NCBI RefSeq assembly: GCF_001194135.2
Contig: NC_068990.1
Location: 85,958,263 to 86,000,946 of the forward strand
Origin: Octopus bimaculoides
Taxonomy: Eukaryota
Length of the DNA stretch: 42,684 bases
Reading direction: 5' to 3'
This document shows, piece by piece, positions 4,579 through 42,096 of the stretch. How positions within the stretch are numbered: the stretch's first letter is position 1; every line of letters starts with the position of its first letter. The notes beneath the pieces are model-generated. The model was not told the origin of the DNA and did no database searches. It saw only the letters and a program-made list of their open reading frames with translations. The translations under genes and the position numbers were made by a program.

Positions 4579-5312
4579 CTGTAGAGTGTTCTTTGTTAGC
4601 TTTTTGTATGGATAGTTTGATGGATGTTTGGTACGTAGTTTTCTACTGGAAATGGAGCGGCAGGCGTTTTAGTAGCAGTAAAGACATGGAGGATGCTGCT
4701 TGTAACAGTACGGTGGTGATTATAACATGTTGGTTGGTAATTAGAAGTTGTTTGTCTATCGGTAAAATACCCCCCCCCCCCCTTTTTATTTTACTTGTGA
4801 TAATTATCTAGAATATTTGGGTGTGTGTATGTATGTGTGTTATCTTTACCATTCCAGATAAGGGAGTCCCACTTAGAATGTAGTTCATATAGCAACAACT
4901 AATGTCTTACACTTAGTGGGCTACATCAGAGAGTGTACCGTTTCTAGAACATAGCCATGTTCTTGAGAGATCGTTTGTTGATGTGACATCTGTTCAGTGA
5001 GGAGGAATAGAATTAAATTACTGTTTAAACCAGGAAATAAATTTCCCATCCCCCATGTATTTTTACTTTATTAAATTTAATTAAACTATTATATTTCTAT
5101 TAAGAAAACAACTTTTTAGTCTGTAATTTGATAAGTTTAATCCCAACATTTTGTAATAGAAGCTGACTCCTTTTATTATATACTTTGTTTATTGTCTAAC
5201 GAAAAGGAACCAGAGCATTTAGCATTTGTAGGACTTCTTAGACTGGGGTGTGGTATAATATCTTGGTGAAGGTTACATAAGCATTGTGGTCTCTCTGCTT
5301 GTATGCGCATAA

Positions 5313-6390
5313 GTATGTAGAAAAGGAGTAGGTAGTAACTCTATAAGATGTACCCGGTGCAAGCTATGGACACATAAGAGGTGCAGCAACATCAAAGGCA
5401 GGTTAACTAGCAAGTTAGTTTTTGTTTGTGGCAGATGTTCAGGTGCAATAAAGACTGCAAACAAACAGGAAACAACTTCTATCTCATTCCAGGGTGAAAA
5501 ACTAGAGGTAGTCGATAGCTTCCGCTATCTGGGCGACCAAGTTAGTAGTGGGGGTGGGTGCGCTNNNNNNNNNNNNNNNNNNNNNNNNNNNNNNNNNNNN
5601 NNNNNNNNNNNNNNNNNNNNNNNNNNNNNNNNNNNNNNNNNNNNNNNNNNNNNNNNNNNNNNNNNNNNNNNNNNNNNNNNNNNNNNNNNNNNNNNNNNNN
5701 NNNNNNNNNNNNNNNNNNNNNNNNNNNNNNNNNNNNNNNNNNNNNNNNNNNNNNNNNNNNNNNNNNNNNNNNNNNNNNNNNNNNNNNNNNNNNNNNNNNN
5801 NNNNNNNNNNNNNNNNNNNNNNNNNNNNNNNNNNNNNNNNNNNNNNNNNNNNNNNNNNNNNNNNNNNNNNNNNNNNNNNNNNNNNNNNNNNNNNNNNNNN
5901 NNNNNNNNNNNNNNNNNNNNNNNNNNNNNNNNNNNNNNNNNNNNNNNNNNNNNNNNNNNNNNNNNNNNNNNNNNNNNNNNNNNNNNNNNNNNNNNNNNNN
6001 NNNNNNNNNNNNNNNNNNNNNNNNNNNNNNNNNNNNNNNNNNNNNNNNNNNNNNNNNNNNNNNNNNNNNNNNNNNNNNNNNNNNNNNNNNNNNNNNNNNN
6101 NNNNNNNNNNNNNNNNNNNNNNNNNNNNNNNNNNNNNNNNNNNNNNNNNNNNNNNNNNNNNNNNNNNNNNNNNNNNNNNNNNNNNNNNNNNNNNNNNNGT
6201 GACACGTAAAAGCACCCACTACACTCTCTGAGTGGTTGGCGTTAGGAAGGGCATCCAGCTGTAGAAACTCTGCCAAATCAGACTGGAGCCTGGTGTTGCC
6301 ATCCGGTTTCACCAGTCCTCAGTCAAATCGTCCAACCCATGCTAGCATGGAAAGCGGACGTTAAACGATGATGATGATGATGATGATGAT
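5313..6390 (+). mobile_element. 5'-truncated RTE-like LINE: ORF2 fragment (PHD-like finger + RT FxYLG motif), gap, then 3' UTR and (GAT)n tail
   Basis: The open frame 5313-5564 reads VCRKGVGSNSIRCTRCKLWTHKRCSNIKGRLTSKLVFVCGRCSGAIKTANKQETTSISFQGEKLEVVDSFRYLGDQVSSGGGCA. After the gap (5565-6198), the LINE 3' end appears in the same orientation. Continuity across the gap is inferred. Confidence 0.82.
5565..6198. other. Assembly gap (others: 2170-2190, 10649-11043, 23535-23800, 28043-28441, 29910-30479, 37768-38190)
   Basis: Runs of N. Most abut young repeats or satellites. Confidence 1.
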
Positions 6391-6954
6391 AAGCATGTCA
6401 ATGCATAAATGTCTGCGTTTGCTGTGCATGTCTGCATATGTGTGATGCGTTTCTCTCCTCCACCCGTCTACCTCATTACGCTGTCTCAAAGCTAGAAACT
6501 AAGAACAGATTCTATTTATAAAAGTCAGGATGGCTGTCGGTACCCGCTCCACCACCACCGCCATCCTGTTTTATTTTTGATGTTGGTGATTTCAGCAAGG
6601 AGTAATAATAATAATAAATAAAATGGGTATCATTTAACTTAAATTGCCTTATTTAAAAAAAAAAAGGTGTAAAAATTTCATATTTTTTATGAAAATCTCC
6701 AAAATTGATCAACTCTCCTCATCACCCCATCCCACTGTCTAAAAGTGAAAATGAGTGGCTATTTTTTCCGTTTCCACATGCGTAAATTTATAGTGAAATG
6801 GCAAAAGGATAATGGCATGTGAAGCCCTCACTATGAAACTTGGTATGCTAAAAATAACAGCTAAATGTCTGAAAAATGTTTGTGATTGTATGTGCACGTG
6901 TGCAACAATTTCTGTAGCTTATCTGAATGAACAGAGAAAGCACACAGAAATATA

Positions 6955-7661
6955 TGTGGAAGAGGTAGACCCAGGAGGACCTGGGATGAGGTGGTGAAGC
7001 ATGACCTTCGAATGTTGGGCCTCATGGAGACAATGACAAGTGACCAATACCTTTGCAGATATGCCATGCTTGAGAAGACCCAGTAAGCCAAGTAGAACCA
7101 GAGCTGTGACCTATGCCAGTGTTGCATAACCAACCCATTTAAGAGTACCCTTCAATCACTGGGTAATATGCTGTGCTTGAGAAGACATGTTGAGTCAAGT
7201 GAAATCATTGTCGTGGCCGATGCCAGTACCGCCTGACTGGCACCGGTGCCAGTGGCACATAAAAAGCACCATTCGAATGTGGTCGATGCCTGTTCCACCG
7301 GACTGGCTCCTCTGCTGGTGACACGTAAAATGCACCATACGAGTATGGTCAATGCCAGTGCTGCCTGACTAGTTCTTGCTCAGAGTGAAAGGTAAGATGT
7401 ACCCAGTGTAAGATATAGACACGTAAGACGTGCTGGTGGCACATAAAAAGCACCATTCGAGTGTGGTCAATGCCAGTGCTGGTGGCACATAAAAAAAGCA
7501 CCCACTACACCCTCTGAGTGGTCAGCATTAGGAAGGGCAGCCAGTTGTAGAAACCTTGCTAGATCAGATTGGAGCTTGGTACAGCCTCCTGGCTTGCCAG
7601 TCTTCAGTCAAGCTGTCCAACCCATGCTAGCATGGAAAGCGGATGTTAAATGATGATGATG
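6955..7661 (+). mobile_element. 5'-truncated RTE-like LINE: ORF2 C-terminus plus complete 3' UTR
   Basis: 6955-7086 reads CGRGRPRRTWDEVVKHDLRMLGLMETMTSDQYLCRYAMLEKTQ*, the RTE-type RGRPxxxW...DL C-terminal motif. It is followed by about 570 nt of UTR with tandem hairpin units and a tgatgatgat tail. This ties the abundant GAT-tailed repeat to the LINE. Confidence 0.88.
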
Positions 7662-8861: not shown

Positions 8862-9869
8862 ACTCAGATTATTACAAGGTATTAATAACTGAAACATTTA
8901 ATACCTGTTTGTAGTATCTTTGTAATCTTACTGAAAAAAAAATTTTTTTTTTTCCTTTTACATCCAGTTCGAGATTCAGCTGAATGGTCAAATGCGGAGA
9001 TCCAATTTTTAGTGGTAGAAGTTTCTGGATCTACATTAATTCAATCAATGTAGAGTCTCATTTCTGAAAATGATAGTGTGATTTGAGAGAGATTTGGCTG
9101 CTGTTTTTAGCAGTCAGCGGTTGGGTGGAAACCTTTTAGATTATATTGTTCATCTTAGTCAGTCAGTCACAGCATAACTGTTTTATTATCATCAATGTGA
9201 AATACACAGAACTGACAACACGAGCAATATCAGCAACAATAACGACACTAGGAGACAGTCAATTAAAATCTACCCCAGTATTTGATGATGGAAGGATCAA
9301 ACATAGTCACCCTCTCTGAAATTTGTGCATATAATGTAAAGAGATGGAAATAATTATTGCAAAGCATTTTTGTTAGCTCTGCAGAAACTATCATCCACTG
9401 CCACCATTTTGTCTGAAAAACGTGACCGATTCTATCACTCACTACTTTATTGCAATAATAGTAATAATGATTTAATATGGGAAGCAGGTCACAAATTTGA
9501 GAAACCTAATTGATTTGCTCAACTTTCATACCACCTGATTGATATTTATTTTATTAGCTGTGGAGGGATAAAAGACAAAAGTTGCCTTTGATGTGATTTG
9601 AACTCCGTGTAGAGAGCTATATTAAACATAGCAATATATCTTGTCTGTGATGTCATTATTTCTACCTTTCTATTGCTTCAGCAGTAATAATATTAGGGGG
9701 TTTTCATTTTAGTTATTCTGCTCAGAGAAGAGAATGGTGATGGTATCTTTTATTACTTTCATGTTCTCTTATCTTTTACTTTCAAATGTGGTACATATTC
9801 CAGCATTTTTGTTTTGTTGAATTGCTTAGTTGTGAGGACGAATCAACACCAGTTGCCAAGTAGTAGTTG

Positions 9870-9918
9870 CTCTCTCTCTCTTTCTTTCTCTCTCTCTTTC
9901 TCTCTCTCTTTTTCTCTA

Positions 9919-9968
<50 letters not shown>
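9870..9968. repeat. (CT)n microsatellite
   Basis: Directly visible CT/CTTT run. Confidence 0.95.
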
Positions 9969-9971
<3 letters not shown>

Positions 9972-10009
9972 ACTCAATCCTTCACTCCTCACTCACTCAC
10001 ATGTGTGCA

Positions 10010-10165
10010 TGAGACTTCCATTCAGTTTCTGTCTGTCAGATTCACTCACAAAGCATTGGTCAGCCTGGGGCTATAATAGAAGACACTTGCTCAAGGTGTT
10101 GTGTGGTGGGATCAAACCTGGAACCATCTGGTTGAAAAGCAAGCTTCTTAATGACATAGCTATGA
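10010..10165 (-). mobile_element. tRNA-derived SINE family 1, 5' half
   Basis: Degenerate reverse complement of the family 1 head (compare 38958-39110). Confidence 0.75.
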
Positions 10166-11559
10166 CTAGAGAAAGTTTAAAAACAAAATTGTAGGGACTC
10201 AGTCAAAGAAGGAAGGGTAACAGCTATGTTATTTTTAGGTGACTGGTGGGAGGAAAAGAGGATGTTCTGGTCCGAACATTTGCAACAGAATGGTCTCTGC
10301 TAAGGACTTCAGTGGCTAGGTTGAGTTACGCTGGGTAATGGATTATATCTGTCACCTGAGACAAGACTTCACGCTGTTTAACTTCCAAATTCCACAAGAC
10401 TTCTATGCAGTGGAATTTGAACATGGAACTACTGTAGTTGCAGATTGAACTTCTTAACTACACATCCATGTTCAGTTTGCTGGCTTTTGTGTATTAGCGT
10501 TGGGAGGCATGGAGGGGTGGGTGGAGTAAGTCCCAGTGTGTGTGTGTGGGGGGGGGGATGGGTACAGACTTAATACCGAAGAGGAAGATCAAGGAGAAAT
10601 ATTTATCGCAGCTGGGAATGGGGGTAGGACATATTTGCTCAGGTTGACNNNNNNNNNNNNNNNNNNNNNNNNNNNNNNNNNNNNNNNNNNNNNNNNNNNN
10701 NNNNNNNNNNNNNNNNNNNNNNNNNNNNNNNNNNNNNNNNNNNNNNNNNNNNNNNNNNNNNNNNNNNNNNNNNNNNNNNNNNNNNNNNNNNNNNNNNNNN
10801 NNNNNNNNNNNNNNNNNNNNNNNNNNNNNNNNNNNNNNNNNNNNNNNNNNNNNNNNNNNNNNNNNNNNNNNNNNNNNNNNNNNNNNNNNNNNNNNNNNNN
10901 NNNNNNNNNNNNNNNNNNNNNNNNNNNNNNNNNNNNNNNNNNNNNNNNNNNNNNNNNNNNNNNNNNNNNNNNNNNNNNNNNNNNNNNNNNNNNNNNNNNN
11001 NNNNNNNNNNNNNNNNNNNNNNNNNNNNNNNNNNNNNNNNNNNGGGGAAAAAATAAAAGATTACTAATAATTATAATAATAATAATAATAATAGTAACAA
11101 TTCTAGTATATTGCTCCTACTTAATACATCCTGGTTAAATGTGGGTGCGTATGCCAATAGTGCCCCCCTTCCTCTTACCCAGTGTTATTACTTGATGCGA
11201 AGTCAGCTAATCCTTCTTTCCATCAATTAAGAGCTTTATCTCGACGGAACACCATTGCTAATGTCTTAGGTGCAGATTATCTTCAAATTTAATCCCGTCT
11301 TCCTTTTTCTCTCCTTCTCTTGTTTCTCCATCTTTGTCAGATGTTCACAAACTTCTTGTCTTAAGCTTCTAATTTTCCTGTCCAATTCCTGCTGACATGG
11401 TTAGGAAGCATATAAATACATCGACAATGGTGGTCACAGCAGTGTTAGTTGTGGTCATAGTAGTCACAGTGGTAATGCAGTTGATCACGGTAGCAGTAAT
11501 GGTAGTAGAATGTTATTCATCATCATCATCGTCAACTCTTGGACATTACTGCCTGGAGT

Positions 11560-13470: not shown

Positions 13471-14752
13471 CAGGGTGCAGTGAATAAATTGATGTCTAAA
13501 TTACACAAAAATTCGAATAACACCAACATCTCATTTTAACATATATTTATAAAAATTAAATAAAAATATCTTGAAATACTAAAGAATAAATTTCTTCAAT
13601 AAAATCACCATTGGCTTCAACCATGGCCGCCAAACGACTTTGGAATCTCCTGCAACACTTTTGGAGAGTCTCCTTGTTTAAGTTGGTGAATGCTGCCATA
13701 ATCCTTGCCTTCAGTTCATCTTTGGTGTTGCAAGGAGTTTTGTTGGTCTCTTACTCAACTGCACTCCACACAATAATCAAGGGGGTTGTAGTCTGGGGAG
13801 TTAGGTGGCCAGATGTTAGGGGTGATACAGTCATAGAAATTGTTATACAGCCATGACTGGGTTCTCCTGCTTGTGTGACAGGGTGCAGAATGTTGTTGCC
13901 AGACATAAGGTCTTCCAGCAGCCACCCTCTTCACCCAGGGCAGCACTACCTCCTCCAGGCACTTGATGTAGGCCTCCGTGTTAAGTCTGTGGGAAGATGA
14001 ATGGAGGCATAATGTCACCATCACTAGTGATCACTCCAAACACCATGACGTTGACTGGATGTTTGATTTTTATCACTCTCAGTACATGTCTTGGGGACAC
14101 GGCAAGCCAACAGTTGTTCTGTGTGTTCACTATCTGATCCTGGCAGAAATTTTTCTCATCTGAGAAAAACCAAAGCATGTTTGGTTGGAGGTGGTGCTTG
14201 AGTTTGTTCAAAAGCTTTGTAGCACAGTCTTTGCTCTTGTCCTTGATGACTTGGGATAAAAATTGGCCCTCTCTCATCTTGTATAAGGAATACCGAATGT
14301 CTTCATTCATGTATTACCTGCCTGATAAGAAACTCAGACACTCACATGTACCTGATTGACTTGAAAGGATCGTTGTCATTCATAGCCTGAATCTCACCAA
14401 CAAATTCAGGAGTCCTTTTCTTGTCTGAGAACAATCAGTGAGTTTTCCAAGCTGCCATAGATTCCTAATCACCGTTAGACTCCTCCAACTCTTTCCGAAT
14501 CCTCTCTGCTCTGTCCTAAGATTGACACCCAAACACTCTGAAATGCTCATATTTGAGCTTCTGATGCAAATGCCAAGCAATACAGCATGTCATTTCCAAA
14601 TTTCTGGTAGAGTGAATTGCGTCATGGTACTGTCTTTCTCACACTGCCCGACTGACCCTACTATACTGTGTGGTCAACAAAATCAAAAACAAACCGTGCA
14701 CATAGGCAAAATTAAAAATACAAAGTGGCAACAGTTTACCCATTGCACCCTG
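13471..14752 (-). mobile_element. Full-length (1282 bp) decayed Tc1/mariner transposon, DD37D/maT family
   Basis: TIRs CAGGGTGCAgTGaaTAAAtTGaTGtC versus CAGGGTGCAaTGggTAAAcTGtTGcC match at 20/26. TA lies at 14753-14754 and CA at 13469-13470. Frameshifted transposase pieces read WFFSDEKNF...MVFGVITSDG (13981-14310) and WQQ[H]SAPCH...WPPNSPDYNPLDY (13755-14024), with 37 residues between the 2nd and 3rd catalytic positions. Confidence 0.92.
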
Positions 14753-25612: not shown

Positions 25613-26954
25613 ATTTTTTTTTTAAATGTTTGAGTAAGAATATTTAGACACAGAAGTTGCTTATTCAACTTCAGCTGTGTGTGTGATGGGTAGAAAGATA
25701 CTGGGAAGTTCTTAGGAAGCTGTTGACTATTTTTAGCTCTAAATATTCCACCAGTTCTGTTTGTTTGTTTGTTTATTTTATGTTTTTTTTTTCGATGTTG
25801 TTAACTGAATAATTATTTATAGTCGGGATGACCTGGTGATATTGAGAAAGAAATTTCTGTGTGCTGTAGAAGATTGGAAACGTGCTGCCAACGTGTGTGT
25901 TTTGTCTGCTGTTTCTTGGTTTCACTGTATTCATGAGATTCTGTAGTTATAGTAATAGTAGTAGTAGTAGCAGCAGCAGCAGCAGCAGTGACAGATATTT
26001 GGTTGGTTCTATTGACACAGTTTCACCCTTTCAGTGTCACATTGCTTAAAGCAGTCAATTGAACATCTGTACAGTTAAAAATAATTGACTGGTGGCTCAT
26101 TAAGAAAACGTAAATTCAGTAATACCCACTCACCTCTTTCTTCTCTGCCTCCTCCCCTCCTCCTTTAGTCTTTATTGTGTACTCCCCAACCACTGCACTC
26201 AATTACTTAATTATTCCCCTTCCTTTTCAGACTTTTGGAATTCCTTCCTTGTTTATGTTATTCCAAGATGTCAAACAGTCTTGGAGTACTTTCAAAGGAT
26301 CATAATCACTATCTTTGCCTCCTCTGGTTTACCAAGAATACATTTCTGAACTGTATTAGTCTAATCTGTTAACCCGTGAGATTTGACTAAAGGGTGACGT
26401 GTGTGACAGTGAAAGAGTTAGTCTCCCTCATTATTACTTTTAATTAGTTTGGGTGTTAAAAGCAGTGGAGTAACTGATATGGTAGAATACCTGGCAGACT
26501 AAATTACTTTCTCAATACATTTCCATTCCTTGATTTTCGGTGCTCAAATATCACTGAAGTTGGTAAAATAATCGGCTCGTCTTTGTTTACATGTATGATC
26601 AGTGTTTCACCCATAACCATCCTGACGTTTAGTAGAATCACTACATTGCCGGTGCTTATATATATATGTGTAAAGATCCAAGGATCAAGGTGTAGGAAGT
26701 TAGTAAGCTTCAAGCAGTCCATAGAAGGTATAAAATAACTTTCAGGAACAATAATGTTTCATTGACATAAAAGGTTGTAAATTTTTCTCATATTGAAAGT
26801 CAATAAACTGAAGTTATTTTATAGTTAACGGTTAGCAGCTATGAAACAGGTGTAGTCTAGGTTTTATCTACTCCATTCCCTAAATTTGGATATATATATA
26901 CATATATATATATATGTAAAATGTGAGTGTGATTGTGTTTAATAAACATAGACA

Positions 26955-27110
26955 CAGGAGTGGCTGTATGGTAAGTAGCTTGCTTACCAACCACATGGTC
27001 CCGGGTTCAGTCCCACTTCGTGGCACCTTGGGCAAGTGTCTTCTACTATAGCCTTGGGCCGACCAAGCCTTGTGAGTGGATTTGGTAGATGGAAACTGGA
27101 AGACGCCCGT

Positions 27111-27144
<34 letters not shown>

Positions 27145-27377
27145 GTGTGTGTGTGTGTATATATGTGAGTCTGTGTTTCTATGTCTGTTTGTCCCCACAA
27201 CATCACTTGACAACCAATGCTGGTGTGTTTACGTCCCCATAACCTAGCGGTTCGTCAAAAAAGATTGATAGAATAAGTACTAGGCTTACAAAGAATAAGT
27301 CCTGGGGTCAATTTGCTTAACTAAAAAGGCGGTGCTCCAGCATGGTCGCAGTCAAAGGACTGAAACAAGTAAAAGAG
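26955..27377 (+). mobile_element. tRNA-derived SINE family 1, full length, with internal (TA)n(TG)n
   Basis: The head ggagtggctgtatggtaagtagcttgc...ccgggttcagtccc has a B-box-like motif and the tail reads ...gactgaaacaagtaaaagag. It is colinear with 38958-39298 and 40154-40533. Confidence 0.9.
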
Positions 27378-27824: not shown

Positions 27825-28010
27825 ATCATCATTTAACGTCCACTTTCCATGCTAGCATGGGTTGGATGATTTGACTGGGGACTGGTGAAGCAGATGGCTA
27901 CACCAGGCTCCAATCTGATTTGGCAGAGTTTCTACAGCTGGATGCCCTTCCTAATGCCAACCACTCAGAGAGTGTAGTGGGTGCTTTTACGTGCCACCAG
28001 CACGAAGGCC
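27825..28010 (-). mobile_element. LINE 3' UTR copy inserted in (TA)n
   Basis: Reverse complement of the 6199-6390 type, about 90% identical by eye, with (TA)n on both sides. Confidence 0.9.
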
Positions 28011-28605
28011 AATATATATATAATTGTTAAAGAGGACAACAANNNNNNNNNNNNNNNNNNNNNNNNNNNNNNNNNNNNNNNNNNNNNNNNNNNNNNNNNN
28101 NNNNNNNNNNNNNNNNNNNNNNNNNNNNNNNNNNNNNNNNNNNNNNNNNNNNNNNNNNNNNNNNNNNNNNNNNNNNNNNNNNNNNNNNNNNNNNNNNNNN
28201 NNNNNNNNNNNNNNNNNNNNNNNNNNNNNNNNNNNNNNNNNNNNNNNNNNNNNNNNNNNNNNNNNNNNNNNNNNNNNNNNNNNNNNNNNNNNNNNNNNNN
28301 NNNNNNNNNNNNNNNNNNNNNNNNNNNNNNNNNNNNNNNNNNNNNNNNNNNNNNNNNNNNNNNNNNNNNNNNNNNNNNNNNNNNNNNNNNNNNNNNNNNN
28401 NNNNNNNNNNNNNNNNNNNNNNNNNNNNNNNNNNNNNNNNNAATAAAGAGATGAAGAGAGAGAATAAAAAAGAAGCATAAACGTTCACAGTTCAACTTTC
28501 CGATGTTGCAGAAATAAGTGCATAAGCCCTCGTAATCCGTTACAGCACTTACCTAACATACCTAATCGTTTAGATCACCTGTGAACTAACTCCCCATACT
28601 TTGTA

Positions 28606-29770: not shown

Positions 29771-30480
29771 GGGCTGCATGTCATCATCATCATCATACGT
29801 CCATTTTCCATGCTGGCATGGAATATTTTTTATTTTAATTTATTCTTTCTTTTTGTGGGGGTCTTGGAAACAAATCACTACTGCTTTTATTTATTTATAT
29901 ATATATATANNNNNNNNNNNNNNNNNNNNNNNNNNNNNNNNNNNNNNNNNNNNNNNNNNNNNNNNNNNNNNNNNNNNNNNNNNNNNNNNNNNNNNNNNNN
30001 NNNNNNNNNNNNNNNNNNNNNNNNNNNNNNNNNNNNNNNNNNNNNNNNNNNNNNNNNNNNNNNNNNNNNNNNNNNNNNNNNNNNNNNNNNNNNNNNNNNN
30101 NNNNNNNNNNNNNNNNNNNNNNNNNNNNNNNNNNNNNNNNNNNNNNNNNNNNNNNNNNNNNNNNNNNNNNNNNNNNNNNNNNNNNNNNNNNNNNNNNNNN
30201 NNNNNNNNNNNNNNNNNNNNNNNNNNNNNNNNNNNNNNNNNNNNNNNNNNNNNNNNNNNNNNNNNNNNNNNNNNNNNNNNNNNNNNNNNNNNNNNNNNNN
30301 NNNNNNNNNNNNNNNNNNNNNNNNNNNNNNNNNNNNNNNNNNNNNNNNNNNNNNNNNNNNNNNNNNNNNNNNNNNNNNNNNNNNNNNNNNNNNNNNNNNN
30401 NNNNNNNNNNNNNNNNNNNNNNNNNNNNNNNNNNNNNNNNNNNNNNNNNNNNNNNNNNNNNNNNNNNNNNNNNNNNNNNT

Positions 30481-30681
30481 TTCATGCGGGTGACACGTAA
30501 AAGCACCCACTACACTCTCTGAGTGGTTGGCGTTAGGAAGGGCATCCAGCTGTAGAAACTCTGCCAAATTAGATTGGAGCCTGGTGTTGCCATCCGGTTT
30601 CACCAGTCCTCAGTCAAATCGTCCAACCCATGTTAGCATGGAAAGCGGACGTTAAAGGATGATGATGATGATGATGATGAT
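30481..30681 (+). mobile_element. Young LINE 3' UTR copy with (GAT)n tail, next to a gap
   Basis: Four substitutions relative to 6199-6366. Confidence 0.9.
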
Positions 30682-33945: not shown

Positions 33946-34210
33946 GTTGACTTGATCAGAGCCAATCTGGGGCTGAGTAACATTTATTATACCTTGAATA
34001 TTCATGTTCAGAACATTATTTAATGTGTATATGCAGAGCTCAAGATACCCGACATTGAAAATGAATTCTAAAGAGAAACTGTTATCATAGAGAGGTTGAG
34101 ACAGACCAGGAATATAAATGTAGAACTGCAAGAATTAAGTGGATGTTACCAAATTCTCTTTATCCGTATTAATACTGAATCATTTGTTTTTTTTTCTTTT
34201 AATTTTACAG

Positions 34211-34323
34211 ATGAGAGGAAACTAACTGAGAATGAGTTACCACTGGTGATCCAACTGAACTGGGGCACTGATATGAGAGATGGACGTTTCTTACTGAAAT
34301 GTGAAAATGCAATAACTGCAAAG
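34211..34323 (+). CDS. AFDN: Afadin coding exon (probable exon 3), end of RA1
   Basis: The acceptor is ttttacAG (34209-34210) and the donor is AAG|GTGAGT (34324). G+AT gives D, then ERKLTENELPLVIQLNWGTDMRDGRFLLKCENAITAK (afadin ERRL...PLVVQLNW..D.R.GRF.LK.EN). Length 113 nt, phase 1 to 0, compatible with the upstream exon. Confidence 0.96.
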
Positions 34324-34859
34324 GTGAGTGGGTGGTGTCATGTTTGGAATACCCTTCTTAGCATTTTTATCTTTTGCTTATTCCGACACTTCTGTAACGG
34401 TCCTCATCATCCTGAACATCATTAGAGAAGTTCTAATTTTCAGATAATTATGAACCGTTTAATGAATGTAATGATTGTGGAAGTGGGAAGAACTGCAAGT
34501 CAACTGGAACTAGAAACCAAGATCTTGTCACTTCACATGAAAACCAAGTGATTTTCTGTTGGAATTAAGTTAAATGGTTACAGCCAGTTTCATTTACAGA
34601 ATTAATTTTTCTCATTTGCTCAAATATTTGCTTCGCAAAAGACCTGACAGCGTATGTCTGTGCTTTTGTTAGTAGTTTACTCATGAATGTAATTATTAGT
34701 TGGTGTATAGACGTTTTAGTGTGTATGAGTGCACCAGAAGAAGAAAAGTATATGTGGAGTATTAAGTTTTGAGTACAGAGATACTGGGCCTCACTGAGGA
34801 AATGACAAGGGATCGGGAGTTCTGGCGATTTGCTGTACTTGAGAAAAGGCATCAAGCTA

Positions 34860-35090
34860 AGTAAAATTACTGTCATCCATCCATACATACAGGCTTGTCT
34901 TTTACAGGTGCCAGTTCCAAATAAAATGCACTTGTGCCGGTGGCACATAAAAAGCACCCAGCACACTGTAAAGTGGTCGGCATTAGGAAGGGCGTCCAGC
35001 TGTAAAAACCATATCAAAAGAGAAGTCTTCTGCCTAGACGTCCAACCCATGCCAGCATAGAAAATGAATGTTAAATGATAATGATGATGA
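34860..35090 (+). mobile_element. Degenerate LINE-3'-end-related copy
   Basis: gtgccggtggcacataaaaagcaccc...cattaggaagggcgtccagctgta...ccaacccatgccagcat...gttaaatgataatgatgatga. Confidence 0.75.
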
Positions 35091-37120: not shown

Positions 37121-38190
37121 GTAAGAATTCTTTGATTTTATTTATTCATTCATGAATAGCATGTTCTGTCAGGTCAGCGCCAGGCTAAACCCTTTACAGC
37201 ATTTAGTCTGGTCTCTTGACATCTTTAAATCCTTACAGAGTTTACGAAGATGTTTAATCACTCTAAGGTCGACAAAAATCAATACGAGTAAAATATTGGG
37301 GGGGTTTCACAGTTATAGGAATATACTTCTATACTTAGAGGACATTTTACTTCTATTAAGAATAACCTCTTCAATTCTTTCTCTTCCTCGTTAACTTTCC
37401 CCTTTCCTCTTCCTCTCTTCCCCTCTTTGTTTCCCTTTTTTCCTGTCTTACTCTCTTTTCTCATCTCCTATTTCTCTCTTCTCCCTTCTCATCTGATTAG
37501 GTCTTTTTATATATATATATATATTTATATATGTGTTGACCACTAACGTGGACATTCAATGTGCTAGAAATAGATCACATCTTGTGTCTAATAAGACCTA
37601 AAACATGAAACATAGCGTGATACCAAAACGTAAGCGGGCAAGACATTTAAAATCACCGAAAAAGGAACATTCTTAAACAGGGACCGGTTTCAAAATTTAA
37701 CAATCTTACCGACTGTCTATTTCTCTTCAGCCTGATTTGTAATGGAACCATAATCATCAGAACCCCANNNNNNNNNNNNNNNNNNNNNNNNNNNNNNNNN
37801 NNNNNNNNNNNNNNNNNNNNNNNNNNNNNNNNNNNNNNNNNNNNNNNNNNNNNNNNNNNNNNNNNNNNNNNNNNNNNNNNNNNNNNNNNNNNNNNNNNNN
37901 NNNNNNNNNNNNNNNNNNNNNNNNNNNNNNNNNNNNNNNNNNNNNNNNNNNNNNNNNNNNNNNNNNNNNNNNNNNNNNNNNNNNNNNNNNNNNNNNNNNN
38001 NNNNNNNNNNNNNNNNNNNNNNNNNNNNNNNNNNNNNNNNNNNNNNNNNNNNNNNNNNNNNNNNNNNNNNNNNNNNNNNNNNNNNNNNNNNNNNNNNNNN
38101 NNNNNNNNNNNNNNNNNNNNNNNNNNNNNNNNNNNNNNNNNNNNNNNNNNNNNNNNNNNNNNNNNNNNNNNNNNNNNNNNNNNNNNNNNN

Positions 38191-38340
38191 GTTAGGAAGG
38201 GCATCCAGCTGTAGAAACTCTGCCAAATCAGACTGGAGCCTGGTGTTGCCATCCGGTTTCACCAGTCCTCAGTCAAATCGTCCAACCCATGCTAGCATGG
38301 AAAGCGGACGTTAAACGATGATGATGATGATGATGATGAT
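38191..38340 (+). mobile_element. Young LINE 3' end with (GAT)n tail, next to a gap
   Basis: Identical to 6241-6390 over 150 nt. Confidence 0.92.
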
Positions 38341-39828: not shown

Positions 39829-40107
39829 ATGTGTTGTGCAGTAACATATTCCTAGATGCAGAAAAATCTGTTTGAGTCTGTTTCCTAGTTATTGGGTGCA
39901 TTTTTCTTCTGTGTATCTCTGTCTTCACGTGTATACTTAATATGCCACCATTTTACGAAACACAGACATAACACAGCAATTATTCACCATAGTGATTTCC
40001 AGTTATTTTAAAAGTGTTTATGGCTCTTTACCAATATTTGACAAACACAGTCAACAACCACACAGTCAACAACCACACAGTCCTGGAACCCCATTTTCAT
40101 CCTCTTG

Positions 40108-40153
<46 letters not shown>

Positions 40154-40158
<5 letters not shown>

Positions 40159-40319
40159 CGCAGGTGTAGCTGTGTGGTAAGAAGCTTGCTAACCAACCAC
40201 ATGATTCCTGGTTCAATCCCACTGCATGGCACCTTTGGCAAGTGTCTTCTACTATAGCCTTGGGCCGACCAAAGCCTTCTAAGTGGATTTGGTAGACAGA
40301 AACTGAAAGAAGCCTGTCG

Positions 40320-40363
<44 letters not shown>

Positions 40364-40533
40364 TCCTACCACCATCTCTTGACAACTGATGCTGGCGTGT
40401 TTATGTCCCCCTGTAACTTAGCAGTTCAGTAAAAGAGACCAATAGAATAAGTCCTGGGGTCAATTTGTTCAACTAAAGGCAGTGCTCCAGCATGACTGCA
40501 GTCAAATTACTGATGCAAACAAAAGAATAAAAG
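40154..40533 (+). mobile_element. SINE family 1, full length
   Basis: Colinear with 26955-27377. Confidence 0.88.
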
Positions 40534-40575
<42 letters not shown>

Positions 40576-41195
40576 GTGTTTGTGTCTGTCTACACACGCA
40601 CACATACACACATAACTGCTTCCACTCATTAACAGTTGAGTGGATAAAAAAAAAAAAATCTTATTAGTTTTCTGTAACTGATTGGGATGAAATATTGCAA
40701 AATTTATGAAAAAATTCCAAAACTTTAAACCAAGAAATTTTTAAATAAATCTAACAAAGACAAATCAAAGATGACTCTACTGCCATTTGGTAAGCAGCCA
40801 GGCTCTATATGCAGAAAAAAGGTGTTGGTAGGAATAGCATACAGAGTACATGTTGTAAGTTATGGATTGCAGGCAAACTGACTGGCATGAAGGATTCTGT
40901 GTGTAGCAGAATGTGCAGGCGTAATTAGCATAAAGAGCACTTATAAAATAAATTTATCCAAATGCATAGAGGGCTTTTCTGTAAGTAGTTAATAACTTCT
41001 GTTACCTTGGTGACCTAATTAGCAATGGCGGTATGTGCTCTGAAAGCATAGAAACCAATGTAAGAACAAGGAGGGAGCCTTTAATTTTGCTTGCATCTAA
41101 GAGATTTTCTTTCTGAGGAAAGAGCAGAATGCTTGTGTACAAAGTGTAATATTGCATGGTGGAGAGAGAGAGAGACCTGGGCATGCAATATGGGT

Positions 41196-41580
41196 GTGTT
41201 AGCACTCCGTCGTTTACAATGTCGAGGGTTCCAGTTGATCTGATCAACGGAACAGCCTGCTCGTGAAATTAATGTGCAAGTGGCTGAGCACTCCACAGAC
41301 ACGTGTACCCTTAACGTAGTTCTCGGGGATATTCAGCGTGACACAGTGTGACAAGGCTGACCCTTTGAATTACGGGCACAACAGAAACAGGAAGAAAGAG
41401 AGAGAGAAAGTTGTGGTGAAAGAGTACAACAGGGTTCGCCACCATCCCCTGCCGGAGCCTCGTGGAGCTTTAGGGGTTTTTTGCTCAATAAACACTCACA
41501 ACGCCCGGTCTGGGAATCGAAACCCCGATCCTACGACCGCGAGTCCGCTGCCCTAACCACTGGGCCATTGTGCCTCCACT
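41196..41580 (-). mobile_element. tRNA-derived SINE family 3 (OR/CORE-like), tail type b, with intact TSD
   Basis: Perfect 10-bp TSD CAATATGGGT at 41186-41195 and 41581-41590. The tRNA-like head contains TGGCCCAGTGG and GGTTTCGATTCCC. Confidence 0.92.
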
Positions 41581-42096
41581 CAATATGGGTAGGGGATGTG
41601 AAAAGGCTGGAAAGAAATGAGTGGGGGCATGTTCTGCTGGATTTGTGATGTTAATGTGTATGACTGACAAGATAGAAATGGACAGAAGAAAACTGGGTTG
41701 TCTGTTCTTGTCTCTTTATATTGTCCCTAATAAGAGGCTCAATGGAGCATCATGCTTGTCTTGTCTCATCATTATTACATCCACCTTAACGAAGGCAGAG
41801 GTATTGTTTTCAGTCACGTTTGTTTGTCTGTCTGTCCGTGGGCAAGATATCTCAAGAACTGCCAGATGGATTTGGATGAAACTTTCTGGAATGTTTCACC
41901 TTGTGACTGGCATGAACTGATTAGATGTTGGGATCGATCCACTACCAGACAAGGATTCTGGATTATTTTTCCATTTTTTAAAATTAATTTTGGTTCATTT
42001 TTAGTATTGCTTGTGAGAGCAGTTGAGTTTATTGCTTATTATTTTATTACTTAGCCTTTTATTGCTGAATCTTATAATTAAATTTTTTAATTCCAG

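Follow-up and report, generated by a model that had tools for sequence, protein, structure and literature searches.

A PHD-type zinc finger predicted to lie inside the reverse transcriptase palm of an RTE-like LINE family, with a truncated copy in Octopus bimaculoides

A stretch of 42,684 nucleotides from Octopus bimaculoides (assembly GCF_001194135.2, contig NC_068990.1, positions 85,958,263 to 86,000,946 of the forward strand; hereafter, the window) contains, at positions 5313-5564 of the plus strand, an open frame of 84 codons in which the pattern of a PHD-type zinc finger is followed by FxYLG, a motif of the reverse transcriptase (RT) of long interspersed nuclear elements (LINEs). The question raised by this locus is how a PHD finger comes to share a reading frame with an RT and what such a finger could do there. 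The best explanation overall, to which we assign a probability of about 0.55, is that the segment belongs to a truncated copy of an RTE-like LINE whose family carries the finger as a module for contact with the target site. The two parts of this explanation differ in strength: the identity and architecture, namely an RTE-like LINE with a PHD finger inside the RT, can be considered nearly certain, whereas the function assigned to the finger itself is tentative and falls somewhat short of even odds. The fragment includes the following features:

5304..5312, plus strand: TGC GCA TAA, a possible first Cys codon plus a 3-base in-frame stop insertion, or else unrelated flank at the 5' truncation.
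5313..5564, plus strand: fragment of a LINE open reading frame (ORF) with the finger and RT motif 7, identified by translation and the Pfam PHD match; its 3' side is ended by an assembly gap.
5316..5438, plus strand: PHD-type finger, ligands 2 to 8, C-x10-C-x2-C-x4-H-x2-C-x14-C-x2-C, with a Trp two residues before the His.
5502..5537, plus strand: RT motif 7 (primer-grip hairpin), LEVVDSFRYLGD; its F, Y, L and G are invariant in our alignments A3 and A4, and it corresponds to strand 865-868 of the full-length structural model.

Direct translation of 5313-5564 yields VCRKGVGSNSIRCTRCKLWTHKRCSNIKGRLTSKLVFVCGRC...LEVVDSFRYLGDQVSSGGGCA (in full, VCRKGVGSNSIRCTRCKLWTHKRCSNIKGRLTSKLVFVCGRCSGAIKTANKQETTSISFQGEKLEVVDSFRYLGDQVSSGGGCA), which is identical to the translation quoted in an earlier reading of this DNA made from the letters alone (the sequence-only reading), where the PHD pattern and the FxYLG motif had been noticed in a frame without a start codon. 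ATG, GTG and TTG are all absent from the frame, a TAA stop immediately precedes it (5310-5312), and there is no stop at 5564, the frame continuing into a run of N at 5565-6198. Seven of the eight zinc ligands are present, with a spacing that matches the mode of the family, C-x2-C-x10-C-x2-C-x4-H-x2-C-x13-15-C-x2-C, and the RT motif FRYLGD is located 27 residues further on. The linker, previously given as roughly 25 residues, is 21 residues long when counted from the last Cys to LEVVD and 27 residues long when counted to FRYLG. The closest protein matches of the window peptide are fragments from O. bimaculoides (E 2.3e-28, 72% identity); among the family members discussed below, the segment shows 95% identity to P0071, 68% to P0034 and 53% to P0231, an intact ORF of 1060 residues.

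A hidden Markov model search with the window peptide identifies the Pfam PHD family (PF00628) with 24.8 bits (E 2.2e-5; the gathering threshold is 24 bits), with the first Cys lying outside the frame. The match is no product of chance, and RVT_1 and PHD are both found in intact ORFs. PHD is the top zinc-finger family match for the window peptide and for the scanned intact ORFs, above PHD_2 and C1_1. Readings of the finger as C1, FYVE or RING were considered and rejected: C1_1 reaches 16.5 bits, below its cut-off of 26.5 bits, the ligand order is C4HC3, and FYVE accounts for 2 of 50 fold matches.

A blastx search with 5000-5330 found no RT sequence upstream of 5313 at significance (the upstream match has an E-value of 21), and the window copy is therefore taken to be 5'-truncated at approximately 5285-5319. 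The truncation proposed in the sequence-only reading thus stands, but the loss of the first Cys that was attributed to it may not have occurred. The sequence TGC GCA TAA GTA TGT at 5304-5318 reads C-A-stop-V-C, which fits C-x-V-C (in the family, C-[GAS]-V-C) plus three bases, TAA. The first Cys of the finger may survive as TGC at 5304-5306, the TAA being a small insertion; equally, this could be chance sequence at the junction.

The finger is widespread. A profile of the region 5313-5564 compared to 1.84 billion representative proteins retrieves 4502 clusters at E<=1e-3 (1564 at E<=1e-10), ORFs of about 1000 residues among them, and a profile of the finger plus motif 7 retrieves 1076 proteins at E<=1e-8; the C4HC3 pattern is matched by 191 of the first 299 proteins retrieved. 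In short homologues, the upstream sequence YADD...GLRVNxxKTKxM, that is, RT motifs 5 and 6, is in frame with the finger. In intact ORFs, the order of Pfam domains is Exo_endo_phos (APE endonuclease), RVT_1 and PHD, with PF00628 scores from 18 to 28.6 bits, on both sides of the threshold. All 78 intact ORFs examined (950-1130 residues) share the order endonuclease, RT, finger, remaining RT, and in all of them the finger begins 56-58 residues past xADD and ends 22-31 residues before FxYLG. From these comparisons, the ORF of the intact relatives is composed of an APE endonuclease, RT motifs 1-6, the PHD finger, motif 7, the thumb and a C-terminal region. A colinear arrangement of RT, finger and C-terminus is also found in genomic DNA of another eukaryote (contig L001). 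Hence the finger and the RT indeed occupy the same ORF and frame (78 of 78), as the sequence-only reading had it, and, given that the finger is common to more than 1000 proteins of many assemblies and to a second copy in the window at 40815-41166, the segment is not a one-off chimera.

Conservation was assessed in an alignment of 63 of the 78 intact ORFs, which are 38-60% identical to its first sequence. All eight ligands of the finger (seven Cys and one His) are invariant, so that the full C4HC3 set expected of the family is there; the Pro that precedes the first Cys, the Trp located two positions upstream of the His and the catalytic ADD are invariant, too. The mean frequency of the top residue is 0.63 in the finger, compared to 0.675 in the RT core, 0.585 in the APE domain and 0.55 in the thumb and C-terminus, and the two linkers that flank the finger are the most variable parts, with 0.39 and 0.22. 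At the level of sequence, this shows a discrete constrained module, about as conserved as the RT core and located between variable linkers.

The closest fingerless relatives, which come from Necator americanus, Orobanche, Capsicum, Tanacetum and others, align to the family on both sides of the finger but lack it. Their span from xADD to FxYLG is 62-70 residues, in contrast to 123-133 (mostly 125-130) in the finger-bearing ORFs, so that the insertion comprises about 62-65 residues. A neighbour-joining tree built after removal of the finger and linkers splits 83 finger-bearing from 15 fingerless ORFs with a bootstrap of 94/100, which fits a single acquisition of the finger, within this sample and in an unrooted tree.

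The assignment to an RTE-like group, already suggested in the sequence-only reading, fits the architecture: a single ORF encodes the APE endonuclease and RT, and its stop codon is followed within a few bases by a (GAT)n repeat. Pfam detects neither an RNase H nor a C-terminal Cys-rich (CCHC) domain in the eight intact ORFs scanned, and no Cys-rich stretch is apparent past the thumb in the A3 consensus. Furthermore, the intact ORFs of about 1000 residues are found on contigs of 3.1-4.7 kb and accordingly leave no room for an ORF1. The LINEs of the RTE clade (RTE-1, BovB and the octopus RTEs) similarly possess a single ORF with N-terminal APE and RT, lack ORF1, RNase H and a C-terminal CCHC domain, terminate just before a simple-repeat tail, and have a short interspersed nuclear element (SINE) partner with the same tail. 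The nearest relatives with source names are APE-RT ORFs from Necator and plants, with 28-38% identity. The C-terminal pattern of the family, RLRWxGH...GRPxxxW...DRxxWR, presumably resembles that of BovB.

Structural models were obtained for a fragment and for a complete protein. In an AlphaFold model of a fragment of 146 residues, the finger has a predicted local distance difference test score (pLDDT) of 83-89, and a Foldseek search with this model identifies as top PDB matches almost exclusively PHD fingers (ING1/2/4/5, Pygo, BPTF, BAZ2B, TAF3), with target TM-scores of 0.6-0.67, root mean square deviations of 2.7-2.8 A over about 52 residues and probabilities mostly of 0.9-1.0; the E-values, 0.015-0.1, are modest, as expected of so small a domain. 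The full-length AlphaFold model of P0231, built with the 63-sequence alignment, has a mean pLDDT of 87.4 and a predicted template modelling score (pTM) of 0.80, and its top PDB matches are human L1 ORF2p (8uw3, E 2e-39), R2 proteins, group II intron RTs and APE nucleases. The relevant elements of this model are arranged as follows:

P0231 residues 771-780: strand of RT motif 6.
P0231 residues 795-838: finger, with strands 806-808 and 815-817 and a short helix.
P0231 residues 852-874: hairpins of motif 7, with FCYLG at 866-870.
P0231 residues from 880: thumb helices.

The finger, modelled here with a pLDDT of 90-95, is predicted to adopt the interleaved two-zinc PHD fold with its small two-stranded sheet. 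In the model, the palm encloses it; it follows motif 6 and immediately precedes the primer-grip hairpin of motif 7. Since the order is motif 6, finger, motif 7, thumb, the finger does not lie between the palm and the thumb, where the sequence-only reading had considered placing it. The pLDDT of both linkers is likewise high, about 89-94, pointing to a module that is docked and not loosely tethered.

These data bear on the possible function of the finger. We tentatively propose, by analogy with R2 elements, that it is a module for contact with the target site (DNA and/or nucleosome) that occupies the 'motif 6a' slot. During target-primed reverse transcription, the finger would fill this slot, the loop between motifs 6 and 7; a docked zinc module beside the primer grip would give the ribonucleoprotein an extra hold on the target site, the conserved basic surface of the finger would contact DNA, and a pair of aromatic residues might also engage methyl-lysine of a histone tail at a nucleosomal target. 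In R2 complexes caught during target-primed reverse transcription, the motif 6a loop touches or wedges into the upstream target DNA (PMC11204384, PMC12180492, PMC13188248). The mean net charge of 290 fingers of the family is +5.7 and that of the window copy is +11; Lys or Arg is conserved at P0231 positions 792, 800, 818, 819 and 824. The aromatic pair consists of a Y/W/F residue two positions before the first Cys (54 of the 63 intact ORFs; 166 of the 191 fingers) and the Trp before the His (63 of 63).

Several points weigh against this proposal. The location of the R2 motif 6a between motifs 6 and 7, and with it the same topological slot in a LINE RT as that of the finger, is presumed from the name of the motif. 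The placement of the finger relative to the primer, template and target DNA is suggested by the order of elements in the model, and the aromatic pair is defined by alignment with TAF3. The analogy may fail because R2 is only distantly related, inserts site-specifically and has another type of endonuclease, a restriction-like one; its motif 6a is a short loop that does not bind zinc, and R2 finds its specific target site by means of zinc-finger and Myb domains at the N-terminus. The fingerless relatives among RTE elements transpose without this module, and hence the finger is accessory rather than part of the core machinery. With regard to taxonomic spread, the carriers with source names come only from O. 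bimaculoides and the crab Petrolisthes cinctipes, and the RTE label is drawn from the architecture. As for the contact with histones, TAF3 residues D877, M882 and D889, the first and last of them acidic residues that serve for H3R2 and the lid of the cage, align with Gly, Ser and K/S/N, respectively.

The replacement of these acidic residues also counts against the rival that survives best, according to which the finger is a true reader of an H3K4me3-type histone mark that steers insertion to particular chromatin states, with DNA contact being secondary. Under this explanation, a histone-mark reader would be built into the RT palm, in a loop facing the target, and the chromatin state at the nick would gate the initiation of target-primed reverse transcription; both the reader function and this gating seem unlikely, at perhaps half the credence given to the contact module or slightly above it. 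The nearest solved relatives by sequence are indeed H3K4me3 readers, with TAF3 (E 6.5e-5) followed by PHF13, PHF23, KDM5B, ALFIN-like proteins and BPTF, and the closest folds are the ING1/2/4/5 and BPTF fingers that were solved with H3K4me3 peptides. Fingers of this kind (TAF3, ING1-5, BPTF, PHF13, PHF23) share with the family the C4HC3 ligands, the CxxCxxWxHxxC core, the predicted fold and the aromatics of the TAF3 cage walls. The H3K4me3 readers have fingers that are neutral or acidic in net charge. The finger of the LINE family differs from them in its charge of about +6, in the loss of the acidic residues that contact H3 and in being embedded in an enzyme domain. Being basic, it would face an H3 tail that is basic, too, and the invariant Trp might be kept for structure, as a core residue of such PHD fingers. 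The walls themselves are well matched: among the cage residues of TAF3 (defined in PMC12238850), W868 and W891 align with the Y/W/F position and the invariant Trp, respectively, and I883 aligns with a conserved Ile of the finger. Moreover, transposons have gained PHD fingers repeatedly, and chromatin roles have been proposed for these by the respective authors (PMC4120745, PMC8557442, PMC9940879).

Less probable still is a finger without any role at the target site, the finger being either a zinc module that braces the palm structurally or one that clamps the RNA of the element or the RNA-cDNA duplex; it may replace the C-terminal Cys-rich domain that is absent from RTE-type elements. The docked appearance of the module (pLDDT 89-95 over the finger and both linkers), its strongly basic surface and the lack of CCHC or other Cys-rich Pfam domains in the scanned intact ORFs or of any such region apparent past the thumb in the A3 consensus all count in favour of this possibility. 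The fingerless relatives, however, have a stable palm with their short span between xADD and FxYLG, and the high variability of the flanking linkers is easier to reconcile with a self-contained module than with an integral brace; in addition, the aromatic two positions before the first Cys and the Lys/Arg patches on the surface are conserved beyond the needs of folding. Finally, the view that 5313-5564 is an exon of a host PHD gene, a one-off chimera or a chance Cys/His pattern, for which one could invoke the missing start codon and upstream RT of the window copy and the UniProt name of the octopus fragments, simply 'Zinc finger PHD-type domain-containing protein', is refuted by FRYLGD following the finger in the same frame, by the shared order and spacing in the intact ORFs, by the number of proteins that match the finger-plus-motif-7 profile, and by the copies in contig L001 and elsewhere in the window, and is hardly credible.

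The preferred interpretation, an RTE-like LINE with a target-site contact module inside the RT, can be compared to several known systems. An octopus RTE with an ORF of 1109 residues (RTE-2_OV) has been reported to contain an InterPro zinc finger, described as 'relatively rare in RTE elements', in a study that placed the octopus elements with zinc fingers in the RTE clade and found an active RTE in O. bimaculoides (PMC9115989). In that study the finger is classed as C2H2, with no location inside the RT given, whereas the finger of the present family is a PHD finger inside the RT; the two are probably the same family. Among CR1 and L2 LINEs, PHD fingers are known from ORF1 or from the N-terminus (PMC4120745, citing Kapitonov and Jurka 2003). 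Like the finger described here, they are accessory modules gained by APE-type LINEs, with a proposed role in contact with chromatin or the target, but they are located in ORF1 or at the beginning of the ORF, upstream of the endonuclease, whereas the present finger is inserted into the catalytic RT domain, between its motifs 6 and 7. In five Chlamys families, Penelope-like elements of Chlamydomonas, PHD fingers are inserted inside the RT or endonuclease domain (PMC8557442), as opposed to being appended, which is the situation in our family as well; the Chlamys elements differ in class, in having a GIY-YIG endonuclease and in the site of insertion, between RT2a and RT3 or inside the endonuclease, and they comprise five algal families, compared to a large group with animal carriers. 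A PHD finger has also been described in a Gypsy polyprotein of Chlamydomonas (PMC9940879). In the literature on PHD fingers in RTE, non-LTR and RTE-X elements, we found no published account of an RTE-type LINE with a PHD finger between RT motifs 6 and 7. Automated annotation already labels fragments of the family 'PHD-type domain-containing protein', and Repbase and Dfam probably already hold consensus sequences of the family, the architecture being perhaps catalogued there but not discussed. Many fingers of the family bear the precomputed Pfam label PF27108.1, which may be a recent family that already covers the finger.

The copy in the window is a 5'-truncated, inactive insertion of this RTE-like LINE that retains only the last third of the single ORF. 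The region from 5313 to approximately 6390 is read as one insertion of about 1.1 kb, with the following additional features:

5277..5284, plus strand: candidate target-site duplication ATAAGCAT, the longest word common to both flanks; the partner, at 6389-6396, lies directly past the (GAT)n repeat.
5565..6198, no strand: assembly gap of 634 N that conceals the thumb and the C-terminal part of the ORF.
6199..6364, plus strand: 3' end of the element family, with a tail common to SINE copies; codons 6320-6361 encode QSNRPTHASMESGR, followed by the stop TAA at 6362-6364.
6367..6390, plus strand: (GAT)8 microsatellite tail, the end of the element, by direct reading.

The stop codon is separated by two bases from (GAT)8, which amounts to a very short 3' untranslated region with a simple repeat. 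The last 14 codons, QSNRPTHASMESGR, show 86% identity to the C-terminus of the intact ORF P0243 and also resemble the C-termini of P0244, P0256, P0258 and P0066. In the copy at 34736-35078, the tail begins about 85 bases past the C-terminal DRxxWR region; accordingly, about 604 bases are predicted, from P0034 and this copy, to be missing in the gap, compared to 634 N. The candidate target-site duplication is weak because a flank match of 8 bases, as long as ATAAGCAT, is attained in 7% of shuffles; an alternative, imperfect pair is CATAAGTATG/GATAAGCATG. The segments 5313-5564 and 6199-6390 may instead represent a join of two separate LINE copies, given that four of the seven N gaps in the window, the gap at 5565-6198 included, adjoin the same tail repeat. 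These four gaps are located at 5565-6198, 28043-28441, 29910-30479 and 37768-38190, and the repeat, which has a length of about 170 bases and is shared by LINE and SINE copies, begins beside them at 6199, 30490 and 38191 on the plus strand and at 27997 on the minus strand. The assembly thus seems to break inside the family of tail repeats, which calls for caution with respect to gap sizes and joins nearby.

The repeat at 6199-6364 is present about 10 times in the window (blastn). Sites similar to QSNRPTHASMESGR, apart from 6320-6364, are found at 1280-1360, 27836-27877 (minus strand), 30611-30652 and 38270-38311; the sequence is kept at 79-86% identity to the C-terminus of a distant intact ORF and recurs in SINE copies. 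The ORF of the octopus lineage may stop earlier, after ...AVLEKTQ, in which case codons 6320-6361 could be untranslated. If the octopus ORF does end earlier, what is conserved in QSNRPTHASMESGR may be the RNA, through which the RT would recognize the 3' end, and not the protein.

Other traces of the same family are scattered over the window:

6955-7083: 3' fragment of the family, with the GRGRPRRTW...DxxxxR region 63% identical to P0034.
7393..7433, plus strand: 41-base remnant of finger-coding sequence, 85% identical to 5344-5384 (blastn), inside a SINE-like element at 7250-7653.
34736-35078: 3' fragment of the family, with the GRGRPRRTW...DxxxxR region 49% identical to P0034 and the tail repeat next to it.
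40815..41166, plus strand: second, older copy of the family that extends from the finger through motif 7 into the beginning of the thumb (identified by tblastn with P0034, P0231 and P0243).

The copy at 40815-41166 is degraded by a frameshift, a deletion of 7 codons in the finger and stop codons, and is split by a nested insert at approximately 41167-41585. The minus strand of this insert resembles, by eye, the head of a tRNA-derived SINE; scans of the window for tRNAs (ARAGORN) and Rfam families gave no matches. The SINE-like element at 7250-7653 contains internal sub-repeats of about 60 bases and the tail of the family at 7494-7653, and looks like a non-autonomous derivative that retains a scrap of the PHD region. 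Peptides of artefactual ORFs akin to the nested insert at 41167-41585, located at 9814-10194 (plus strand), 26880-27206 (minus strand) and 40097-40375 (minus strand), suggest a second abundant SINE family between dinucleotide repeats. A minus-strand ORF of 109 residues at 13981-14310 resembles, by eye, a fragment of a Tc1/mariner-type transposase (...FSDEKNF...NTQNNCW...), with no Pfam match at E<=0.01. The only protein signal noticed in the window that is not related to transposons is a plus-strand ORF at 34096-34425 that matches the Ras-association (RA) domain, PF00788, with 24.1 bits (cut-off 21) and might be a host exon.

The window copy itself is an inert fragment, and the interest lies in the feature of the family. 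LINE families with an accessory PHD finger are known, and a finger inside the RT palm, at motifs 6-7, is apparently an undescribed variant: the PHD fingers noted earlier in transposons are separate modules, in ORF1 or at a terminus, whereas here the finger is predicted inside the palm beside the primer grip. The choice of chromatin sites by LINEs that are not site-specific is poorly understood, and the finger offers a concrete, testable handle on target engagement by RTE-type elements. If the palm does harbour a histone reader, a chromatin sensor would be wired directly into the active-site domain of the polymerase. The family is also a natural example of a LINE RT that tolerates a reader or clamp domain in its interior, and as such matters for the retargeting of gene-insertion tools based on R2 and LINEs. 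Given that an octopus RTE has been reported to be active and expressed in the brain (PMC9115989), the biology of the finger bears on that debate.

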